A stretch of 63,387 bases of DNA, counting the filler, from Ministeria vibrans ATCC 50519 (lineage: Eukaryota; Protista; Filasterea), in NCBI GenBank assembly GCA_943704425.1. It is 9 parts of 9 records of this genome, joined end to end, with 100 filler letters (N's around TTAATTAATTAA, not from the genome) between each part and the next. Parts side by side here need not be neighbours in the genome. Positions count along the whole stretch, not along the records: positions 1 to 13,335 come from CALSCP010001897.1; 8 more parts are not named here. One strand, 5' to 3'. This document shows positions 1-13,335 of this stretch, one piece after another. How positions within the stretch are numbered: the first letter of the stretch is position 1; each line of letters opens with the position of its first letter. The notes below the pieces were generated by a model. The model was given only the letters and a program-made list of their open reading frames with translations. It was not told where the DNA came from and ran no database searches. The translations under genes and the position numbers were made by a program.

Positions 1-47
1 GAGCTCGATGGAGAAACCTCGCTCTTCCCAGCCGCCCTCACTCTCTA

Positions 48-79
<32 letters not shown>

Positions 80-109
80 ACTTGCTTTTGTCTCTGGCGC
101 CACCGCAGG

Positions 110-1969
110 TTCCTTCTCGGATTGAAGAAGTTGTCATCCCCCCCGAGGTCACCCCTGAGCATGTGACGACGTACGTCATCGACACAAACAGTACGAAATA
201 CACAATCATTTAATGCACTGATCACATTAGTCATATTATTCATTTTTGCTTTTTTCTTTCTTCTTCTCAGATGCTGCTGAAGAACGAGCGCTGCTTGAGG
301 AGCAAGTCCGCAACGCGAGCGTTATCTGCATTGTGTATGCCGTTGATTCACCCGCGTCCTTTCGCAACATCAGTCAGTATTGGATCCCGACCATTCGATC
401 GGTAAAGAACAACTTTATTATTATGCTTTCATTCCGATCTCATGTGATTTCTCTGTGAAGATTATCAATGGTGATCGAACACCGCTTATTCTAGTGGGAA
501 ACAAGACAGACATGAGATGTAAAAGAAAAATAGGGAACAAAGAACCGATCCTTCTTATGGTGTTTATATAGCTCATGACGAAAAGACGGATGTGAGTGCA
601 CAACTGGTTGCGCAAATGAAGCCACTGATGGCTCAATGTCGTGCCATTGAAACATGTGTTGAATGTTCCGCTCGTTCCCTCAGGCATCTTTCAGAGGTGA
701 GAGAAGACTCGTCATTCATGACAAGTCAGTCAACCCTAAAACATCCTACCCCTAGTGATAAGTTGAATCACAACCCTAATGGCAAGACGTGCAATCCTAA
801 TCCTAAATGTGTATCTTAGGTGTTCTATTTCGCCCAAAAGGCTGTTCTCCACCCGACCTCTCCTCTTTACGACGCAAAAACTCACCAGGTCAGTTTCAAG
901 GGAGTTAATTTGAATGCCGTTTACATCTGTTTTTTTTTTTTTTTTTTCTCTTTTTGAAATTACGCAGTTGAAAAGGGAATGTAAAAATGCATTGACTCGC
1001 ATTTTTCATTTGTGCGACACTGACAAAGACGGACTGATCAACGACAGAGAGCTCAATGAATTCCAAGTGAGATTAACAAACACACAAACGAACGACTCAA
1101 ACACAAACGGACGATTATTTGACACTATAATTACTTACTCTCACACTCAAATTCACAAAACCCCTGTCTCTCTGTCTCAATTTTTTATTTATTTTTTTCT
1201 CTCTCTCTTAGCGCAAATGCTTTAATCAACCACTCTCTGCCGCGGAGCTCACGGGCGTCAAGCAAATGGTCCAAAACAACAACAGTGAGGGAATAGTCTC
1301 CCTCTCGTCTGTGCGTGCTCCATCACCCCACTCCACATCTCCTCATCTCACACCCACTCCAACTCCCACTACTCCTACTACTCATGCTGCAAGTGCCTCT
1401 TCTGGCGATGACTCTGCGTCCACCGGTCTCTCTCTGTCGGGCTTTCTCACTCTTCACATGATGTTTATTCAGAACGGCAGAATTGAGACGACTTGGCAGG
1501 TTAATAGCACTCTCTCTCTCACACACACACAAACCCGCACTCACTTAATCGGCATACTCATATAAACTAATATTGTCTTTAGGCTCTTCGCGCGTTTGGC
1601 TATGCGAACAATCTCCAATTGCGACCCGACTTTTTGTTCCCTCCACTCAACTTTGACACTGTCCACACGAGCACCGAATTGGGTGCCACTGCTGTGATGT
1701 TCCTGTCGGATCTCTTTGGCACTTTTGATCGTGACAATGACTCTGCACTCTCTTCAGACGTAAATTTTGTATTTGTAAATTTTTGTATCATTTATTATTG
1801 TGTGTATTTATGTGTGTGTATGTATGGTGTCTGTCTGTCTGTGTGTGCGTTGACTCACTTGTTTTTACTAAGGATATGGCTCGTCTGATGGAAACGTGCC
1901 CTATTGTTCCGTGGGACTGTGATCCTCGCGCGTGCACAGAAGTTACCGAGCGCAAACTTATCAAACTCG

Positions 1970-2007
<38 letters not shown>

Positions 2008-3379
2008 GTGTCACTCACTGACTCGTAATAATAGTAAATTTAATGTACTATTAATGTACTATTACTACAAATAATAATAATAGTAATAGCAATAACGTTA
2101 ACATTTTTTTTGTTCTTTTAGGGATTTCTGTCGCTGTGGGCAATGGCTGCGCGTATTCAGCCGCGTCTGGTGATCACTGCGTTAATCTATCTGGGATACC
2201 GACCCGCTGCGGCCTCTAAAGCCATCAAGGTGCTACGTGGGCGAAAGGGCAAGAATGGCGACTTCCAGCGACGACGCACTGCTCGGCGGGTGTTTGTTGC
2301 GCGTGTTTTTGGTGGTCGTGGTGCGGGAAAATCAACTGTGGTGCGCTCGTTGGTGCAGAAGACGTATCATGGGAGTGTGCTCTACCAGCATCAGCTGCCG
2401 CCCCAGTGTGCCGTGTGTGAGCTCAACATGGGCGATGTGGCAGGTCACGAGATGGTCTTTGTGATGCGCGAGTCGGGCACGGCCGACGGCGAAGACGCTC
2501 TGCGCCTGAGAGCCGCGACCAAGAGCAAAACGAGTGAGGCTGACGATGGAAAGGATACTGGTGGTGGTGCAAGTGGTAGTAGTAGTAGTGGTGGTGGTGG
2601 TGGTGGTGCTGCTGCTACGTCAGGTGGTGGAGGCGTGACTGGTGGTAAAGGGGGTGGCAGCACAGGTGGCTCAGGCGTGGATAGCGAGACGGAGGGTGGC
2701 GAGACCCGACTGCGTTTTCATGACGATGGCTCAGAGTGTGATCTCATTGTGTGGGTCTTTGACGTGACCGATTCCCACTCGTTCGCCTACATTGCCGACC
2801 GTCTTCCCGGCGTCATTGAAGCCGATCCGACCCTCCCCTGTGCCATTGTTGCGACGCATTGTGATGTTCCCTTTGAGAATTGGGCCACTCAGGTAACGCA
2901 CTCCAAATTAAAACAAAACGTTTAATACGACTTTGTCTTGTTTTATTTATTTTTTTATATTTTTTATTTAGGAATCGGTTGATCCTGAGGAATTTTGCAA
3001 GGCGCATAACTTGCCACCTGTACTCTACTTTGACGTGAACGGAGACGGCAACACGCAAAAGAGTTCGCAACGACGCGCAAAGGAAGCCACTGTGCCCACT
3101 GTAGCACCCACAGCAGCAGCAGCAGCAGCAGCAGAGAATGTAGTGGAGGAAGCGGTGCAACAGACGACGGCGCCGCTGCCGCCACCGCTAGTGACACCTC
3201 GCAAGATGCGCTCAACTCTGCTCTCGTACGCCGTCTCGCCCCACATCCACGCACCCGCCGGTGGTGCCAGTGCGACCCAAGCCACTGGCGCACGCACTGC
3301 CACCGTGCTCGCCGTGGTCTCCACCGTTGCGGTTGTGGCTGCTGTCGCCGCCCTAGTATACTTGCGTACCAAGAAATAA
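110..3379 (+). CDS. RHOT: Mitochondrial Rho GTPase (Miro), multi-exon, 5' end outside window
   Basis: Exons read VPSRIEEVVIPPEVTPEHVTTYVID, VICIVYAVD, PLILVGNKTD, IETCVECSA, YFAQKAVLHPTSPLYD, EF-hands (CDTDKDGLINDRELNEFQ; FDRDNDSALS), GRIETTW, a second GTPase P-loop (GGRGAGKS) and a C-terminal tail anchor (VLAVVSTVAVVAAVAALVYLRTKK*). This is the Miro architecture. Confidence 0.93.
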
Positions 3380-4332
3380 AGTCAATTAGAAAAATAATTA
3401 ATAGAGAAATACAAATATTCCTCCCGATCGATCCAAAGATACAAGAATGATTCAAATCACAGCATTGCGTTGGGAAACGGTAGCACAGCGTAAAATCTGC
3501 AAGAGGGCACCTTGCTAACCACACAAAAGGAATTTAAGAATCCTGGTTTTGTTACTCAGGCTCCGTAGCGCGCTCTTGATGTTCGTTGCTTCTGTGGTAT
3601 TTTCGGATTATTATTCGATCTTCAACCTTTCTCCTTTGATCTTCCTTTTGAGGTTGAACTTTTATTTTCATTTCACTACCTCTCTCCCTGTGATCTTGTT
3701 TCACGACAATCCTCAGACCTCTGTTAGGTACGCATTGGTGCCAATTGCGCTCTGTTCGCGACGTGTGAATTTTTTTGTCACAATCTCATTTTTCAGACGG
3801 AATGTCAACCTTTTTTTTTTTTTTTTTTTTTTTTTTTTGACCTCCTTTCAACCTCAAATTCCACTGTCGACTGTGCAACGGCATGTCTAAGCCACATGGC
3901 CTGCGTGCGGGGGCCAGGGGAGCATAGGGCGCGGCGTGCATTGCGTTTGCTCTGCTCTGCTCTGCACAAACAGCGTTCAAAGACGACCACGTCACCCGAG
4001 CGACTGTCACATACCAGCGAATTCGCTCTCGTGCTCTGCAGCGCCTGCTCGCTCGCCCCTGACACTGCGACAAGTCCATTGTCATCCCATGCTGTGTTTT
4101 TTGCGTCCCTCGAGCGCTGTATGGGCCTCTGTGTGCTGTCGGCTTTTTTTTTTTTTGAAAAGAAAACGAGATGTACACTTTGCACTCACTCACTCGCGTT
4201 TAACTGCATTGTAGTGAGAGAGAACTGAAAGGAGGAGATCGAGGGAGTGAGTAAGTGAGAGGGAGAGAGAGAGCGCGCGCGTGCGGCAGCTGAATTTGTT
4301 GTTGGGCGGAAGAGCACAGAGCGAGCGCACCC

Positions 4333-7300
4333 ATGGACGATCGGGCGGCGAAACATTCTCGACGCCGATCGTACTCGGACAACCTTGCTCAGCGACCTGG
4401 GCGACGATCGAAGCGCACACGGCAGTCTGTCAATGTTGACCAGGACGAGACGCCCGCCAAGGCACGCGTGCAGGACGAGGATGCTCGGGTGAATGCGGTT
4501 TTCGATGAACTTGGCAGGGGACTGTCACCGACAGAGCCACAGCAACAGCAGCAACCGCCACAGAAACCGCAACCAGTACGCCAGCGTGTGACAGTCTCGG
4601 ACGGTGACAGTGCTGACGAAGACGGCGGTGACGTACGCGCCGTGAATCGACAAGGGGGGCGGGCACGACGCGGCAGTGGGCTTGGCGACAACGACGACGA
4701 CGATGATAATGTCGACGTGGACGAGGCACAGGGAATCGTGGAGGCAGAGGCAGGACGACACAAATCGCTCCTGTCCGTTCGTCAGCGGGTGTGGTCGCGC
4801 TGGTTTCGCCTTTATTTTCTTCTGTCGCTCGTGGTCGTTGCCTTCTTTCTGTCAGCACTCTTTACCGACCGCATGTTGCACCTCGCCTCGGAGAATGGCA
4901 TTTCGTACACGCGACAGGACCTTGGACTGGCGTACAGTTGTTTGACGCGAACGAGCATTTCGACGGGCATTGTGCTCGAGCAGGAGTGCGGCTGGAAACT
5001 ACCGACCGACGTGTACTTTATTCTCTCCTTTGGTCTGGTGGTCGCCGCTGCAGCGCTTGCCATCTTCCAGGTGATTGACGCCCTCGTGTGGGTGCTGGTC
5101 ACGTATTATCCCAAACTAAACTGTCTTGGGGGCGGCACCAGTCACATGTACGGCATCACGTCGGCACTCCTGGCCACCGCGTCGATGTTTGTGTACCCCG
5201 GCGGGTTTGGCAGTCTTGAACAGCAGTTTAATGGCGCGCCTGGTGGCTCCTACAAGCTCCCGACGCACTGGAACTTGTCGTATTCCTTCGCCCTGTTGGT
5301 CATGGGCACGTTTGTGTCGCTGTTCATCTGTGTTCTCTTCCTGGGCGATCCGCGACGCCGTCACCACCGCTCGGCTCTGCAGCGTCTCGAGCAGCGTCGT
5401 CGTGAGGTAATGCGGGCAAGCATGGCACGTCGCGAGCGTCGACGTGCTCACAACGACATTGAGCGCGAGGAACGTCATCGACGGCGTCAAGAACGCGAGA
5501 ACCGTCGCGAACAGGAGAGGAGCGCGCAGCAGCACGCGATTGCTTCCGGGCGCATTAGTGACTTGTCGGTAGCGGATGAGACGGCGGCTCTGACGGGGGC
5601 ACGTCGCTCGTCGGCCGTGATCAGTGCTGGTGGAGGTGGTGGCGGTGGCGGTGGCGGTGGCGCGCGTGCCGGAGGAGGCCGCAAGGGGAGACGGACGTCG
5701 CGAGACGAGCAGGCTCAGGCGGCATTGGTGCGTGCCACCAGTATTCCAACGCACCAGGCAAAGGAGGACCGGAGAAAAAATCGCGACGACGTGGACGATG
5801 ACAACCAGGACGATACCGGGAGTGCCGTGCTGGACGATCTCACGGCGATTTCGTCGCTTCAGCAGCATTCTCGTGCCGCTAATCCCGCGCACCATCGAGC
5901 CGTGTACGAACGCACCGATGAGGTGTCGATTGAGCTGTCGGACCTGTCGGGGGATGCAGCGCGCAGTTCTTCAAGCAACTATCAGAATAGCAACCGTAAC
6001 AAGGGCTTCGCACTCGCCCTCGACGCGCCCGTCTCGGCCTCAAACGACGCTGCCACGCAGTACACCGACAGCCGTATGTCAGACGAGACTGCCTCGCGCT
6101 TGGGTCTCTCGCCCGTCTACCGCGACATGAGCTCGCCGCTCGACGCCGACGACATGGACGTGGTGGTGCTCAACGACGACGACGATGGCGCGCCCATTCG
6201 ACACTTCCTCTACGACGATAACTCCAACGACGTTCTCGTGTCCACCTCGGGTCACCATGCCATGGTAGCATCGTTGCGCGCCGAGGGTCGACGTGGCAAA
6301 CGTGCACCCAGTGCTGACGACTCCCTTGAGCGTGCACGCAACCACACCGAGTTTATGATGCAACGACATGACCATGTGTCGTCGTCGGCGGCGTCCGACT
6401 CGGCCTCGTCACCAACCAAAGCACAGCCACAACAACAGCGACGCCGTTTCTCGCAGCCGGCACACCAACAATCACAGGCGCCACCCCCCTGCAGTTTTGA
6501 TGCAGGCTCTATCATTGCCGAGGCGGCTGCCGAGATTGTGGCCGAGCCCAAGACACGTCCTGTCGAGCCGAAACGTCGTGCCCGCGGAGTGCGACCGGGC
6601 CGCGTACGCAAACTCTCTCTTGAAGTGGGCTCACGTGCACGCTGGCCGCATGCCGTTGATGATGACGACGACGAGGACGACGACGACGAACTGTTCACCA
6701 GTCGACGAGTGCGTCAAGCGGTTGCTGGCGCACGCAATGCTGCAGGAGCACGTTTAAACGCTGGTGGAGGGGGTAGTGGTCATTCCCAATACCATCACCA
6801 CAGCCAGAAAGACAAGAGTGCCGGAGCTAGTCATGGCTCGCGACCCCGCCGCCTGTCGCTCGACAATGCACCTCAGGCTCGGTCGTCACGGTCACGATCC
6901 AAAGAGCGCGAGCGGAGCGGGAGTGTTGGAGATCAACATCACTATCAACAGTCTCAGCCACCCGTGTCGGCAACGCTCACGAGCACGGGCAGTCATGGCG
7001 AGGAGGAATACTCACGCAAACACATTGCGGACATTTTGCGGTTATTCTCGTCGGATTTGCAGTCGTCATCATCGGTCACGCCTGGTGGTAGTGGCGGAGG
7101 AGCGTCACGTCGGACACGACACGATCACCGTACGCCGCCGGCTATGTCATCGGCGTCGCCACCTGAGGTGAAGCCCATCTTTGTCATTAGCAACACAGTG
7201 AAGGATCCGCTCACCGATGAGGTGACCACCACCACACATGTGACGACGTCGTTGCGGGCCGCGCCTATGCTAATGTCGGGCGGGGTGTCGCTGGCAACGA

Positions 7301-7603
7301 GTGAACGAGCAAGCGCCAGCGACGCCTCACGCAGATCTTCTGGTGACAATACATCTCTCCAGCGCCCCAAGCAATTTGTCGAGCATCCTGCAGCGACAGC
7401 AGCGACCGCAGCGGCTGCCACTACGCCTGCGACAGCGTCTGCCCAACTATCTGCGTCGCGTGCAATGGACGCTCGATCCCGATTTTTGCAGCAGAGCAAC
7501 ACGTCGAGTGGTGGTCGCTCGAGTCGCGCTGGTGCGAGAGTGAGCACTACCCTGCCGCGACACCCGGGCTACCCAGCACCAGCACGTCCCTCTGACGATC
7601 CCC

Positions 7604-7637
<34 letters not shown>

Positions 7638-7809
7638 TCGCGTGCGTGCCACGTCGGTGACGAGCGAGTCCAGCTCAAGTCGTGCGCGGCATGCCTCTGC
7701 CAACCATCGCACGTCGGACGCACTCTGGGCTCGCATGAACGGCGACGAACTACTCCCACGCGATCGTGCCTCATCCGAGTCCTCGTACAAGGGTCGCAAA
7801 AGGAGATAA
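4333..7809 (+). CDS. 1158-aa protein with a four-TM claudin/PMP22/LHFPL-like module and long low-complexity termini
   Basis: Single long ORF with four hydrophobic segments at about aa 157-337. Loop 1 has GL..C...C (DLGLAYSC...QEC). The TM3-loop-TM4 stretch MFVYPGGFGS...SYKL...LSYSFALLVMG resembles LHFPL-type tetraspans. The CDS is well supported; the family call is tentative. Confidence 0.6.
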
Positions 7810-7910
7810 AGAGAGAGAGAGAGAGAAAAAGAAAGCAAGAGAGAGAGAAGTTTCATTGTTGTGTGTACAGCGTTTGACAAATTGATACGAATTTTTAAAA
7901 AAAAAACGAT

Positions 7911-10413
7911 TCAAGGCTTCCACAAGTGCAAGAGGCCATCCTCGGCAAAGGTAGCGAGAATGTTCTTGTAGGGGTGATGGGCGACGCCAATGACGTCCTT
8001 TTCGTGCACGGGAAAGATGTGCGCGAGCTCACCGGTGGCCATGCGGAAGCAGTAGAGACGGTGGTCCTCAGCGACGGCATAAGCAAAGTCACCGCGAGGC
8101 GACAAGGTGCACGCGACAAAATCGCCACCCCGCTCGACCTCGGAGCGCAGCGTCTTGACAACCTGGCCGTTGATATTGACAATGGAGAGGGTCGACGAGC
8201 GGTTACACACGAGAAACTGGTCCATGAGACGCGGAAGGAAGCGCGCACAAAAGATGGGTGCCTCCGCGGAAACACCGTAGCCGGGGCGGATGCATCGAAT
8301 GCACTCGGTAGTCTTGATGTCCCACAGCTAAAAAGTTGAGGAGGGGATTCAAGAAGGGTGAGTGATCAACACGTAAAAGACAGTGCATGTACATACGCGA
8401 ACTGAACCGTCGCTGGACGCACTGAGACACGTATTATGACCTTCGGGTGAGTAACGTGCGTCGTTGACAAAGGAGGTGTGGCCTCGAAACTCCTTTAGGG
8501 TCTTTCCTGACTTCAGTCCATGAATTCTTTTAAAATAGAGTGTGTGTGTGAGAGAGGAGAGAATGAGTCGGAGTGTGAGGTTGTACCGGACAGTCATATC
8601 AAAAGAACAAGTGAGCAATTGACTGTTGTCGCGACTGAACACCACTGAGGTCACTCCCAGTGTGTGTGCCTTCTCGTACTTGCGCAACAGTTGACCCGTT
8701 TGCACTTTCCACACCTAAAAAAGAGGAGAAACATATGAGAGAGAGAAGAGCGAGAGAGAGAAAGAAACAAGTGACCTTGATCTGGCCTTGAGCGGATCCG
8801 CCAGCAAGCATATCCCCATCGCGACTGAATGACAGTGAGAGAACACTCTTGTCCATCAGCATAAATTTATCTTGTGCCTAGAATTCACAAAGAGACAGAC
8901 ATAATATTTTTTGTCAGAGAACACAATAAACACACAGAAACAAAGTGATACATTTCTTTCTTCCTCCTCTCTCTCACTTTGTTTCTTTCTTTCTCCTCAA
9001 AGTAATAGAAAGGAGGAAGAAAGAAACAAAGTGATAGAGAGAGAAATTGAACAAGACAAAAAAGAAAAAAAAAAACACGCACGAGCCACAGGCGGAGAAT
9101 GAGAGTACCTGATAGGGCAGGTCCTTCCTGAGTCGGCCTGTCCCCACATCCCACACCTCCACAAATCCATCCACGGTGCCCGTTGCAATGCTCCGTCCGT
9201 CTGCTGCAAAGCAACTGCTCTCCACGTGCGATTTGCTGCCAAATTTGAGTGTTCGGCTGTGTTGTGTTGGAAAGGTTTCTTCTTCGCGTTTCTGTGACTG
9301 AACAAAGATATGAGTTGAGCATCTTTATCATTTTGTTTCATCAATCACTTTGTTTCTCTCTATTTGTTTATCACTTTGCTTCTCTCTCTGTCTCTTTAAC
9401 ACTTTCTCTCAATGATCTTTCTTTTTGCGCCTTTCACAACGTTCTTTTTCCCCTCTTTTAAAACTTACGTCTGTCTGAGCTGCATTCAAAAAGAGGTCAA
9501 ACCGCCCAGTCTTCAAGGCCTCTTCAGGAAGCATTTTTTGGCTGAGCTGCCACTTGAGTGATTGGTTGAGAAGTGACATCAAACGTGCCGGAGGAACCAC
9601 TGTCACTTCACCCGCAAGTGCTACAAATTTGAAACACAAACGGAATCAATGAAAGAAAGCCATCGTAATTTGAACCTTCTGCGATGGCTGCGCGTCTTTT
9701 TTCTTTGCTGGATCCGCCCGGGTATGCCTGAAAAGACGGAATGGTCGGTGTGAGACAAAATGCTGCGACAAATCTGTGGGTTTACCTCTCTTGCGTCGAA
9801 AGTGGGGCTTGAGAGGAGATTCTCCAGCTCAATGTAACGGTCGGGATTAGTCTTCTTCAGACGCACCATGACATCTGTTTGGCGCAGCACCGAACGAGCC
9901 GCACCAAGTTCACGCTGTTCAATGAGCTCGACGACCACCTACACAGAGAGGCGCAGTGCGTGTGAGGGGCGCACAGTGAACATAGTCAGTGGACACACCT
10001 GATCGTAGAGCAGCTGCAGCTTAGATTCGCCAATAGCGAGCGTCTGGATCGCTTGGATGACAGTGTCCCAATGGCCTGCAAGAGAGAGCGGCATGTGAGC
10101 AGGCGCGAGGGGCTCAGTCCAAGAGACGCTCACCATTGTGAATGTCAGCGACGAAACTCTCAACGCTCTCCACCGTATTCAGCGAGATGCTCGTTTCCTC
10201 CTAGACAGAGAGAGGAGGGGGTGGGGGGAGGATACACACATGCGTCAATGGCCGGCGAAGGGTACCTGCAGAGTGCTGAGTGTGCGGTGAAGATTGTTCT
10301 CCTTGAGAAACTGTTCGATCAATCGAATCACACTAAAAGACAAACCAGATGAGATCCGTTCGGTCAGTGCGGAGAGGTACATACTCGGATGATTCAATTT
10401 CAAGAGACGTCAT
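7911..10413 (-). CDS. SMU1: WD40 spliceosomal protein SMU1, multi-exon
   Basis: Starts [10 protein letters not shown]; contains [14 protein letters not shown] (LisH), [74 protein letters not shown]; ends [21 protein letters not shown]. Confidence 0.96.
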
Positions 10414-10800
10414 GTTGAAATTATTTATTAATTATTTTGAATTTTGATGATTTTATTGATTAAAATAATGAAGATTAAATAAGACAAATAATTGACCTGT
10501 AAGCTGAACATTGACAATGCTGTGTTATTTTCTATGCATATTGATATTGTAAATTGTAATTATATACGTAGTATCTCTGAAAAATGCGACGGTGAGTGGA
10601 TTGGTGGGTTGGAAATATATTTTTCTATGAGTCTCAACTTTCGACAAGAATATTGTCGCAAACCATACATAAAGTAAAGTCCTAGTCACTAGTGTATCGT
10701 ATTAGTATTGGAAGGTGAAAATAAAAGAGAAAAAATGAGAAAGTATTTTTTAATAAGTTTATATTACACTTTTTGAGGTTTCAGGATCAGCGCAAAAGAC

Positions 10801-10878
10801 AGCGAAGGGTTACGTGTTCGATTCACGTTCGAACCTTCTTTCGGTTCGATAGCTCAATGGTAGAGCATTCGCCTGCAG
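10801..10878 (+). tRNA. Circularly permuted tRNA-Cys(GCA): 3' half 10801-10836, 6-nt spacer, 5' half 10843-10878
   Basis: 5' half: GGTTCGA TA GCTC AATGGTA GAGC A TTCGC CT GCA G. Upstream 3' half: A GCGAA GGGTT ACGTG TTCGATT CACGT TCGAACC T. Rejoined, all four stems pair perfectly (7/4/5/5 bp), with a 7-nt anticodon loop and the U73 discriminator expected for Cys. The junction is at 37/38. Confidence 0.85.
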
Positions 10879-11164
10879 TCTTCGTTTAGATATTTCGACG
10901 TTGTGAGAGTACCTTTTCGCGCGTATTTTGCTTGCGCGNNNNNNNNNNTTCTTTTTTTTTTTTTTGTTTTTTTTTGATCTTTCGAATTCATTTTTTTTTT
11001 TTTTGAATTTTTGACACAACCAATCATAAATAATATAATTAATTATATTATTTATATTTTATTTATTATTATTTTAACAATTGTTTTCAATGCTCCTGTT
11101 GACTTCTGCAGCCGTGCAGCGGGGAGTGTGCGCTCAGTTTGAAAATGTCGGTTTTACTTCGGTT

Positions 11165-12670
11165 TTACTCAATAGTGACATTGGATATGTAGAAGGTGCC
11201 AGCATTGTTGCAGGGTCGGCCGGGCGAGCAGGGAGGCGAGTCAAGCCAATCAACGCCAGTGGATGAGCCCCAGTTGGACATCACAATTGTCATCCCTAGG
11301 AATGTAAAATTGTGAAATTATGATGCATTGTGTGTGTGTATATATATATATATATATGTGTGTGTGCGTGTGTGTGTGGCTACAAGAGAATGAGAGGGTC
11401 GGATAGGATACCTTCGACAAAGGAGGAAGAAAGCGCAGAGAGATAGGCATTGCCGCAGTCAGCGGTGTTGGAGAAGGTGAAGGAGCGCCCGTCCTGACTG
11501 AGCTCAGTTGAAATACCCGTCAGTTGTGTATGCGTTGCGTCACTCGAGTACTCAGAGGTCAGTGTGAATGGTCTACCAACACAGACAGACAAAGAGATAG
11601 AGAGAGAGAGATTGTGAAACGAGACACAGTATAAATCACACAGACCTCTTAGAGTTGATTTTGAATGCATCTGACGGACCAAACGCGTTCTGGTTGAGCT
11701 TGTAAGTGTTCTGGCCACACCCACCGCGGTCACAGGACGCATAGTAGTGTCCCTGAGGCGCATCGCACTTGTGAGGGGTAACCTGAAAACAGAAAGTGAA
11801 ATCAAAAACACGAAAGTGATCGTTCTATAGTGATCATTATTAGTCATACGGCGAGAGCGTTTGTGTTCGCTTCCATAATATCCATTTCCGGACACCACAC
11901 ACCGGAAACCTGATCATCAATTCAACATTGAACATGACGTATTGTCATAACATTAGTAATATAAAATGCTTTCTCCTTTCGTCCTATTTTACCTCGTTTG
12001 CGTCGCAGTAGTAGTCGCCCGAAGTGGACTTGTCTGGCTTTCCATCGCGTCCGTAGCCAGGCATCTCAACCAGATAGAAGGCAGCCACACAGCCACAGTC
12101 CATGGTGCTCAAGTCAATGGTGTAGGACAGTCTTTTCCCAAGCAACATGGCCTTGTAGAAGAGGGTGGCGTTGAAATGGTGCGCGGGCTCGCTGGCAAAG
12201 TAGATGCGCGCATTGCCTCCCACTGCGAGCTTGCCGTCGTCGCCAATCGTCACATTCCGGGTCGCACCACCCGACTGCACAATGAAGACGGACTGCGGCG
12301 CACCATCCACGTGTATTGTCATGTTACCGACGAGAACATCCGCCTACAACACACAATGTTGTCAATGTTGTGTTGATGTAAACAAACAAACACCGTCGCA
12401 TGACGCTGTACCGGCGGAGACGGCCCCGGAGGACACCACGTTCCTTTGCAGTCGCTCTCACAGTTACTCTGCGCTTGATTGCAGTAGTGTCCGGGTACAT
12501 TGCAGCCTAGGAAGCAGAAAAGAGCCCGTTGTGGTTTACGTGTGCGGTTATCGAGTTCTTTTACTTTCACAGTTTGACGCATAGCAGCATTTCCCCGGAT
12601 CCTCTGAAAGGGCAAATGACAGTGATGCCAGTACAATGAGGGTGGAGGCAAGGATACTTTGTGGGAGCAT
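11165..12670 (-). CDS. Secreted GH7-like (clan GH-B) glycoside hydrolase with N-terminal Cys-rich module, multi-exon
   Basis: Signal peptide MLPQSILASTLIVLASLSFA, a Cys-rich module and a PPGPSPP linker. Then YTIDLSTMDCGCVAAFYLVEM, YYCDAN, catalytic WCPEMDIMEAN (near 11870-11900), PHKC...CDRGGC and MTIVMSNW...WLDS...YISNV, which are GH7 motifs. Confidence 0.85.
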
Positions 12671-13141
12671 AGTGAGATTATTAATGTTTAGGATAATATT
12701 AATTTTTATTTTATAATAATTATGAATTATTAGTAGTGAATAATTTTTGTGAATTGGAAATGTTTTCTTCTTCTTTCTTCATTAATGTCTTGTTTTTTAT
12801 TTGTCGAATCTTGCCTTCAGAAATTACCGACGAGCAGTCTACAGCGGAACCGTGTGGTCCTCTCTTACCGACACCACTTATTTGTCAATATGCAATAAAC
12901 AATAATGACATGAGACTTACAGACAGGTTTCACAGTTGTATCCGAAATTAAACAACTTTTGCTCAAATTACATTATTATAATTTTATATTTATAGTCCTG
13001 TTTTGACATTGAGTATTCTCTTCTTCTTCTTCTTCTTCTTCTTAGAAATTATTATTATTAATATTATTATTGTTTTTTTTTACAATTATACACCATTAAT
13101 TATTACATTATTATTGCTCAAGGATATAATATACACAAAGG

Positions 13142-13335
13142 TCACTGACGCTTGCGGTGACGAACAAGCTTTGAAGAAGAAGCAGCGGAGCCCGATTTTC
13201 GCTGCTCGGGAGTACGGACAAAGGGAGAACTGGTGCGGTCGGAGACGGCTGAGACTGATTCAGAGGGTGCAGTGACATTAAGCCAGCGGGAAGCAAGACC
13301 CGACGCAATGGCAATCCACATGCGCAGTTGGTGGA
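13142..13335 (-). CDS. Probable 3'-terminal exon of a gene truncated by the contig end
   Basis: GC-rich open frame HQLRMWIAIASGLASRW...KLVRHRKRQ* followed by AT-rich DNA. No family recognised. Confidence 0.3.

Follow-up and report, generated by a model that had tools for sequence, protein, structure and literature searches.

Circularly permuted transfer RNA (tRNA) genes carry the tRNA's 3' half upstream of its 5' half, both on one strand, and yield a full cloverleaf when the two halves are rejoined (Soma et al. 2007). A total of 34 such genes has been compiled from Cyanidioschyzon merolae, four prasinophytes, the nucleomorph of Bigelowiella natans and Thermofilum pendens (Soma 2014, PMC3978253). 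Their defining features are a TATA-like element within 50 bp on the upstream side of the 3' half, a T-stretch that follows the 5' half, a signal-free intervening sequence of 1-74 nucleotides (nt), a splice-type junction and a circular intermediate (PMC3978253). A review of 2026 restricts the eukaryotic permuted tRNA genes to algae (PMC13578239). The present study concerns a locus of this layout in Ministeria vibrans ATCC 50519 (assembly GCA_943704425.1; 29.7 Mb in 2860 contigs, given here as C-numbers). The window analysed is a stretch of 63,387 nt joined from nine parts of this assembly, in which positions 1-13335 correspond to C1897:1-13335, and all positions without a contig number refer to the window. 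The locus on C1897 is very probably a genuine circularly permuted gene for cytosolic tRNA-Cys(GCA), with positions 10760-10975 forming one transcription unit of the RNA polymerase III (pol III) type, a reading derived from the genomic sequence.

Both halves lie on the plus strand, and re-reading of the sequence reproduced the boundaries and the TCTTTC spacer of the original prediction to the nucleotide. The 3' half (10801-10836, AGCGAAGGGTTACGTGTTCGATTCACGTTCGAACCT) comprises nt 38-73, that is A38, the 3' strand of the anticodon stem, the variable loop GGGTT, the T-arm, the 3' strand of the acceptor stem and the discriminator U73. It is separated from the 5' half by the intervening sequence TCTTTC (10837-10842), which lies between U73 and G1 and holds neither a promoter nor a terminator, as both a TATA element and a T-run are absent. 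The 5' half (10843-10878, GGTTCGATAGCTCAATGGTAGAGCATTCGCCTGCAG) comprises nt 1-37 with the 5' strand of the acceptor stem, the D-arm, the 5' strand of the anticodon stem and C32, U33, G34, C35, A36 and G37. Upstream of the 3' half lies a leader (10773-10800, plus strand), and the 5' half is followed on the same strand by a trailer (10879-10938) that runs up to a scaffold gap of 10 N (10939-10948), the true size of which is not set by the assembly.

The rejoined halves form a molecule of 72 nt that ARAGORN calls as tRNA-Cys(GCA). All 21 stem pairs are of the Watson-Crick type, and the unconstrained minimum free energy (MFE) fold is the cloverleaf, at -23.2 kcal/mol, which bears out the earlier description of a mismatch-free cloverleaf split at 37/38. 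The molecule carries U8, A14, G18G19, U33, G53, C61 and U73, together with the T-loop TTCGATT and the anticodon loop CUGCAGA. U73, the discriminator, is an identity base of tRNA-Cys. The order of the halves on one strand and the complete cloverleaf on rejoining are those of the definition by Soma et al. (2007). Within the assembly, the permuted locus is present in one copy, and so is each of its halves. Sequencing runs from 2011 and 2022 that are labelled as the same organism contain 94-95% of the sampled words of the stretch 8500-10938, and algal-culture metagenomes from 2024 contain 93%; the 78-nt Cys locus makes up about 3% of this stretch, and the word match is therefore no independent proof of the junction.

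In its native order the locus is overlooked by standard tRNA scanners, as had been foreseen. ARAGORN found no tRNA in the native DNA, Rfam gave nothing at gathering thresholds, and a genome-wide search with the tRNA family RF00005, in which 63 of 508 candidates were scored, did not list the locus. At relaxed thresholds, RF00005 covered the 5' half alone (model positions 1-40, 16.8 bits). The best relaxed-threshold Rfam match over 10789-10891 was YrlA (RF02553; 37.7 bits, E = 5e-7), the consensus structure of which has, in this order, counterparts of a T-arm hairpin, an acceptor helix and a D-arm hairpin that align with the Cys locus. Taken at face value, this match would make the locus a Y RNA-like or YrlA-type non-coding RNA that mimics T-arm, acceptor and D-arm and is no tRNA gene. 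We regard such an identity as scarcely credible. The score stays far under the gathering score of 69, and YrlA is a bacterial family without an anticodon arm, whereas the Cys locus has a complete anticodon arm, the anticodon GCA and U73; moreover, seven further anticodons occur among the sister loci described below, and in every case the stems match within the locus. Judged from the alignment, the YrlA match is an independent sign of the permuted topology and not an identification.

The unit begins with a putative pol III upstream promoter, termed here the TATA-CAC element (TATATTACACTTT, 10760-10772, plus strand), the first base of which lies 41 nt ahead of nt 38; then come the leader, the 3' half, TCTTTC, the 5' half and the trailer. 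The 6-nt signal-free spacer and TATATTACACTTT at -41 agree with the spacer and promoter features compiled for permuted tRNA genes (PMC3978253). Eight of 11 permuted loci have the strict form of the element, in each case 36-42 nt ahead of nt 38, the first nucleotide of the 3' half; in the permuted Ser and Gly(CCC) genes, the element has the sequence TATATATCACTTT. As background, the strict form turned up in 1.9% of 80-nt windows drawn at random and in 7.0% of those rich in AT. It also precedes 7 of 18 ordinary tRNA genes of the genome, and therefore appears to be the general tRNA promoter element of the organism. Terminators at the tRNA genes of this genome, ordinary and permuted, range from T7 to about T30, and a run of at least seven T within 3-15 nt after the 5' half was present in six other permuted genes evaluated by script as well as in the permuted Ile(AAU) gene.

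The original prediction had treated the locus as a single odd gene and had suggested a search of the genome for others; the permuted layout proved to be a genome-wide set, with nine more clean loci on seven other contigs, all with the same 37/38 layout. The whole assembly was scanned with a pattern consisting of a T-loop followed, after 19-49 nt, by U8 and a D-arm, and for each match tested the 5' part, trailer, leader and 3' part were put together in this order and submitted to ARAGORN with an intron allowed. Six further loci rejoined to full tRNAs in this way, all split at 37/38. They encode Val(AAC) in two copies (C40, spacer 26 nt), Arg(ACG) (C491, 5 nt), Ser(UGA) (C738, 10 nt), Gly(UCC) (C2280, 6 nt), Thr(UGU) (C2373, 9 nt) and Gly(CCC) (C2647, 9 nt). 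A covariance model built from the single sequence of the window's gene (R1) was too narrow for the genome pre-filter and was replaced by a second model (R2), built from an Infernal structural alignment of the confirmed loci; MAFFT alignments split the stems around the variable spacer and were set aside. Model R2 added two copies of a permuted Ile(AAU) gene with an enlarged D-loop (C1769, spacer 3 nt). Over the genome, it assigned 43.5-86.7 bits to every clean permuted locus, with the Cys locus at 86.7 bits, and the sole other scores in this range belonged to tandem ordinary genes in a cluster on C2083.

Covariation was assessed on nine matches at eight loci (eight isoacceptors, with two Val copies), in an alignment fitted to the model. 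The permuted cloverleaf had 95.7% of its cells paired, compared to 33-49% with slid partners, and compensatory changes on both sides were observed at 19 of 21 pairs; both results exclude chance. Altogether, the tally stands at ten clean permuted loci for eight isoacceptors, two loci with inserts in the T-stem and two decayed-looking ones. The loci with inserts encode Lys(UUU) (C437, plus strand, positions ~1442-1590 of the extracted locus L042), with a 44-nt insert at 51/52, and Arg(CCG) (C335, minus strand, ~19989-20105), with a 29-nt insert at 50/51. A canonical T-arm is restored only by removal of one insert, with a single solution in each case. Both loci have the usual TATA-CAC element, the pair between position -3 and nt 32 and a terminator, and their inserts hold T5-T6 runs. 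These inserts may either be ectopic introns of the kind seen in C. merolae or represent a first step of decay. The decayed-looking loci are a paralogue of Arg(ACG) on C883, which was found by R2, and a degenerate permuted locus on C2431. Further matches were rejected: those of the pattern on C1671, C2781, C2759, C1313, C2330, C1301 and at C883:24025 are chance occurrences in coding DNA, and those of R2 on C2083, C585 and C1523, along with the tandem Leu(AAG) on C1275, are neighbouring ordinary genes.

This set also bears on the alternative named in the original prediction, a collapsed tandem array of ordinary intron-containing tRNA-Cys genes. The locus would then be a remnant or an assembly collapse of such an array, with one copy ending at 10801-10836 and the next beginning at 10843-10878, and the 3' half of the latter would be hidden in the 10-N gap. 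Such an origin is suggested by the position of the gap 60 nt downstream of the 5' half, and tandem duplication is the evolutionary route proposed for permuted genes (PMC3978253). An ordinary tandem does exist in this genome: at C1275:64290-64560, two tRNA-Leu(AAG) genes with 37/38 introns of 26 nt apiece follow one another and reach 42 bits with R2; it is from such a state that permuted genes have been proposed to evolve. The two Leu(AAG) genes are separated by T9 and a fresh TATA element, CTATATAAATGTGTAC, whereas the 6-nt spacer of the Cys locus carries no signals. In a tandem array, the TATA-CAC element 41 nt before the 3' half would fall inside an intron or a 5' half. Neither ARAGORN nor relaxed Rfam searches found another 5' half upstream, in keeping with the earlier statement to that effect, and the 60 nt before the gap contain no 3' half. 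A hidden 3' half would require an intron of more than 60 nt, whereas five ordinary introns of the genome measure 13-29 nt. Each half is single-copy in the assembly. At the nine further clean loci, which lie on seven other contigs, the layout recurs and the 5' half is directly followed by a terminator. Upon this check, which revealed no extra halves outside the gap and a layout unlike that of the C1275 pair, the tandem array appears very improbable.

Eukaryotic splicing endonucleases need an anticodon-intron pair for the 3' cut, as known for the yeast and Xenopus enzymes. The corresponding pair between nt 32 and position -3 was present in all seven permuted genes evaluated by script, as C:G in five and as U:A in Val(AAC) and Gly(CCC). 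Four more loci, Ile(AAU), Lys(UUU), Arg(CCG) and the C883 paralogue, were read by eye and have the pair as well, which brings the total to 11 of 11 with C:G in nine. The ordinary 37/38 introns of the genome, found in Arg(CCU), Ser(GCU), Leu(CAG), Ser(CGA) and Leu(AAG), have the pair in 5/5 cases. At the Cys locus, C32 pairs with G10798 in the leader. A leader pattern AAAG-NN|A had been put forward for this junction: its G at -3 facing C32 was retained, and the motif as a general rule was given up, as only position -3 is constrained across the permuted loci and introns. In the MFE and the centroid fold of the precursor, GCGCAA in the leader (10790-10795) additionally pairs with TTGCGC in the trailer (10932-10937). 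The strict bulge-helix-bulge (BHB) motif of the archaeal type is mostly incomplete across the permuted loci. A side result concerns C1793:34874-34983. ARAGORN called this DNA a tRNA-Thr(CGU) and set the intron at position 36; if the intron is placed at the canonical 37/38 site, an 81-nt class II tRNA-Ser(CGA) results, and the scanner appears to misplace the intron.

Nuclear copies that might supply tRNA-Cys in place of the permuted gene were sought with a pattern for intron-less tRNAs with the loop YUGCAR and a canonical T-arm, with reversed sequence as control. No ordinary canonical nuclear tRNA-Cys was found with this pattern: there were 18 matches compared to 16 in the control, the 17 nuclear ones were rejected by ARAGORN, and the lone true tRNA was the mitochondrial gene. 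A corresponding search revealed no ordinary intron-less Val(AAC) or Ile(AAU), as none of the seven matches (nine in the control) was a tRNA. A second, non-identical nuclear tRNA-Cys(GCA) is nevertheless encoded on C585, with U73 and with C33 instead of U33. The search for an ordinary tRNA-Cys that the original prediction had proposed thus gave the C33 copy on C585 and, by pattern and ARAGORN, no canonical intron-less nuclear gene. The C585 copy belongs to an array that has (GTT)n between its genes and also contains tRNA fragments; its CCA ends are either encoded or partial, and the TATA-CAC element and T-runs are absent. Densely packed tRNA arrays of this kind, which differ from the standalone nuclear genes, were observed at C585:35680-37080 and on C2093 and C2083, the last with G34 anticodons of 'bacterial type' such as Val(GAC) and Arg(GCG); a viral, retro-copied or polycistronic origin of these arrays is conceivable.

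Several observations weigh against the reading as a permuted tRNA-Cys gene. The strict BHB is absent at the Cys locus, with 2/4 central-helix pairs compared to 4/4 in Gly(CCC), and the precursor fold is no more stable than that of shuffled sequences (z = -1.28). The nearest T-runs after the 5' half are only TTTT, at +36 (10914-10917) and +48 (10926-10929), and the long T-run lies past the 10-N gap. The absence of an ordinary copy applies to intron-less genes with canonical loop and T-arm in an assembly of 2860 contigs and to the 63 of 508 candidates scored with RF00005, and the C585 tRNA-Cys might supply the cell. The architecture could then be real and the Cys locus a silent relic, with tRNA-Cys delivered by the C585 gene, which has U73, or by an undetected ordinary gene. 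The decayed appearance of the permuted C883 and C2431 loci, which indicates that decay occurs, and the missing long T-run nearby speak for such a relic. The 21 pairs and all invariant nucleotides of the Cys locus are intact, however, as are its promoter element and the pair between -3 and nt 32. The C585 copy has C33 and stands in an atypical array devoid of TATA-CAC and T-runs, and the pattern search for intron-less genes gave no other canonical tRNA-Cys. On balance, we consider a silent relic unlikely, if somewhat less so than a tandem array. Two runs, T14-G-T9, are located beyond the gap (10952-10975, plus strand). Given the terminators of T7 to about T30 elsewhere in this genome, they are the likely terminator of the Cys gene, provided that the gap is small, and the trailer then probably measures 70 nt or more.

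For the permuted tRNA-Cys gene favoured here, a maturation pathway can be proposed. The primary transcript would fold such that acceptor, D, T and anticodon stems form, and leader and trailer would stand in for a canonical intron at 37/38, where G(-3) would pair with C32. The tRNA splicing endonuclease would then cut after G37 and before A38, and RtcB would ligate G37 to A38, which would yield a circular RNA. Finally, the 6-nt spacer would be cut off the acceptor end by RNase P and tRNase Z, followed by the addition of CCA. We infer expression, the G37-A38 ligation, the circular intermediate and this route by analogy with the described systems and from the conserved signals. A splicing endonuclease and an RNA ligase are encoded in the host genome: the RtcB gene on C2497 consists of several short exons (model positions 23-426), and catalytic domains of the tRNA_int_endo family are found in two genes, on C1244 and C1078. 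The ordinary 37/38-intron genes of Ministeria resemble the permuted ones in the cleavage positions, which follow nt 37 and precede nt 38, in the pairing of nt 32 with the third nucleotide ahead of the 3' cut, in the upstream element and in the T-run terminators. They lose an internal piece and give a linear product, whereas both transcript ends would be removed from the permuted transcripts, so that ligation must circularise the permuted tRNA. In animals, which like Ministeria belong to Holozoa, tRNA intronic circular RNAs (tricRNAs) are made by TSEN and RtcB, and ligation of the RtcB type readily gives circles. The same two enzyme activities would act in Ministeria; the tricRNA circle is a discarded intron, whereas the circle here would be the tRNA body.

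Among the described systems, the type II permuted genes of green algae (Ostreococcus, Micromonas) and of the B. natans nucleomorph share with those of Ministeria the 3' half in first position and the 37/38 junction (Maruyama et al. 2010, reviewed in PMC3978253). Short intervening sequences, AT-rich upstream regions and several isoacceptors per genome are also common to both (PMC3978253). Ostreococcus lucimarinus even has a permuted tRNA-Cys(GCA) gene (PMC3978253). Unlike these plastid-bearing lineages, the host in our case is a heterotrophic filasterean, and the TATA-CAC element is sharply defined and located at a fixed distance. An origin independent of the algal permuted genes seems likely.

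The genes of C. merolae resemble those of Ministeria in a TATA-like element within 50 bp that is common to non-permuted genes, in the T-stretch, in the signal-free intervening sequence and in the number of about 11 affected genes (PMC3978253, PMC3728597). The T-arm introns of some of its permuted genes, e.g., at 55/56 in Gly(CCC) (PMC3978253, PMC3728597), may be compared with the inserts of Ministeria Lys(UUU) at 51/52 and Arg(CCG) at 50/51. In C. merolae, however, the junctions lie at many positions and have a BHB, whereas all those of Ministeria are at 37/38 and keep the pair between -3 and nt 32 with an often incomplete central helix; and the circular intermediate of C. merolae has been shown by reverse transcription PCR, whereas that of Ministeria is predicted from the genes. 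Archaeal permuted tRNA genes likewise have the permuted order and an upstream AT-rich promoter, and differ in the 59/60 junction, an encoded CCA, spacers down to 1 nt and BHB dependence (PMC3218864).

The exact Cys junction had no match in a scan of metagenomes. A looser metagenome scan led to one unrelated contig, Ga0302314_10018930, with 62-70% GC. It contains two adjacent permuted-type units (L126 886-966 and 1034-1113) with R2 scores of 36.9 and 57.2 bits, in which ARAGORN found no tRNA. If cut at 37/38, these units lack U33, and their junction may lie elsewhere. The source is clearly not Ministeria and may be a GC-rich prasinophyte.

The identity of the host as a heterotroph, already assumed in the original prediction, was supported by the mitochondrial atp6 gene on C1523, which is 100% identical to the UniRef entry of Ministeria vibrans (TaxID 134558; Opisthokonta, Filasterea), and by searches of the assembly for psbA, rbcL and LHC genes, none of which was found. 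Contig C1897 would belong to Ministeria as part of a one-organism assembly, and by the tRNA promoter motif that is common across contigs. C1523:1-55949 comprises 55,949 bp with 25% GC and a terminal inverted repeat of about 60 nt or more. The low GC content, the terminal inverted repeats and the heavy in-frame TGA usage identify it as the mitochondrial genome. Its genes for tRNA-Asp and tRNA-Gly are doubled, with one at each end, and several open reading frames (ORFs) of 900-2000 amino acids contain dozens of in-frame TGA; UGA is read as Trp, and a tRNA-UCA is present.

A protein gene with short introns adjoins the Cys locus on the minus strand (8349-10403). From ORF translations read by eye, it appears to encode a LisH/CTLH/WD40 protein of the SMU1 type. 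Given this intron-containing SMU1-like neighbour, the Cys locus sits in ordinary nuclear DNA. A minus-strand ORF fragment at 11984-12322 bears the motif DLSTMDCGCVAAFYLVEMP...YYCDAN, which is reminiscent of the active-site region of a glycoside hydrolase (GH7-like); a Pfam scan of the plus-strand ORFs that overlap it gave no match. The sampled nuclear contigs encode giant, intron-poor proteins with EGF, hEGF and teneurin-type repeats. Intron-free frames of 700 to more than 1000 amino acids, cut by the locus ends, were observed on C945, C324 and C932 with EGF, hEGF, teneurin-type and Delta/Jagged-type repeats, and one of these EGF-repeat frames is fused to an amidoligase domain.

Permuted tRNA genes are a known kind. 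What appears to be new is their occurrence in a heterotroph closely related to animals and their extent of at least ten genes. The literature search on Ministeria or opisthokonts and permuted tRNA yielded nothing relevant, with thin coverage of subscription journals. So far, eukaryotic permuted tRNA genes have been regarded as peculiar to a few algae and nucleomorphs and debated as ancient relics or as innovations of plastid lineages. A filasterean set of at least ten genes would place the trait in Opisthokonta, beside animals, and would argue for repeated independent origin wherever a promoter upstream makes tRNA genes independent of the order of their internal A-box and B-box. A more far-reaching view, which we hold only tentatively and consider possible rather than probable, is that of an independently arisen Cyanidioschyzon-like system of disrupted tRNA genes in Holozoa, in which the permuted genes are the sole ones for Val-IAC, Ile-IAU and canonical Cys and the Lys and Arg inserts are true ectopic introns. 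If this were true, a holozoan splicing endonuclease would handle non-canonical sites, and a circular tRNA intermediate would be obligatory for translation in a close relative of animals. The filasterean set as such would mean that annotations of protist tRNAs systematically miss genes, which in the present genome are the only detectable ones for Val(AAC), Ile(AAU) and canonical Cys. With this set, Ministeria would also become a heterotrophic model for the making and resolving of circular tRNA intermediates, akin to the systems that serve for work on TSEN and RtcB.

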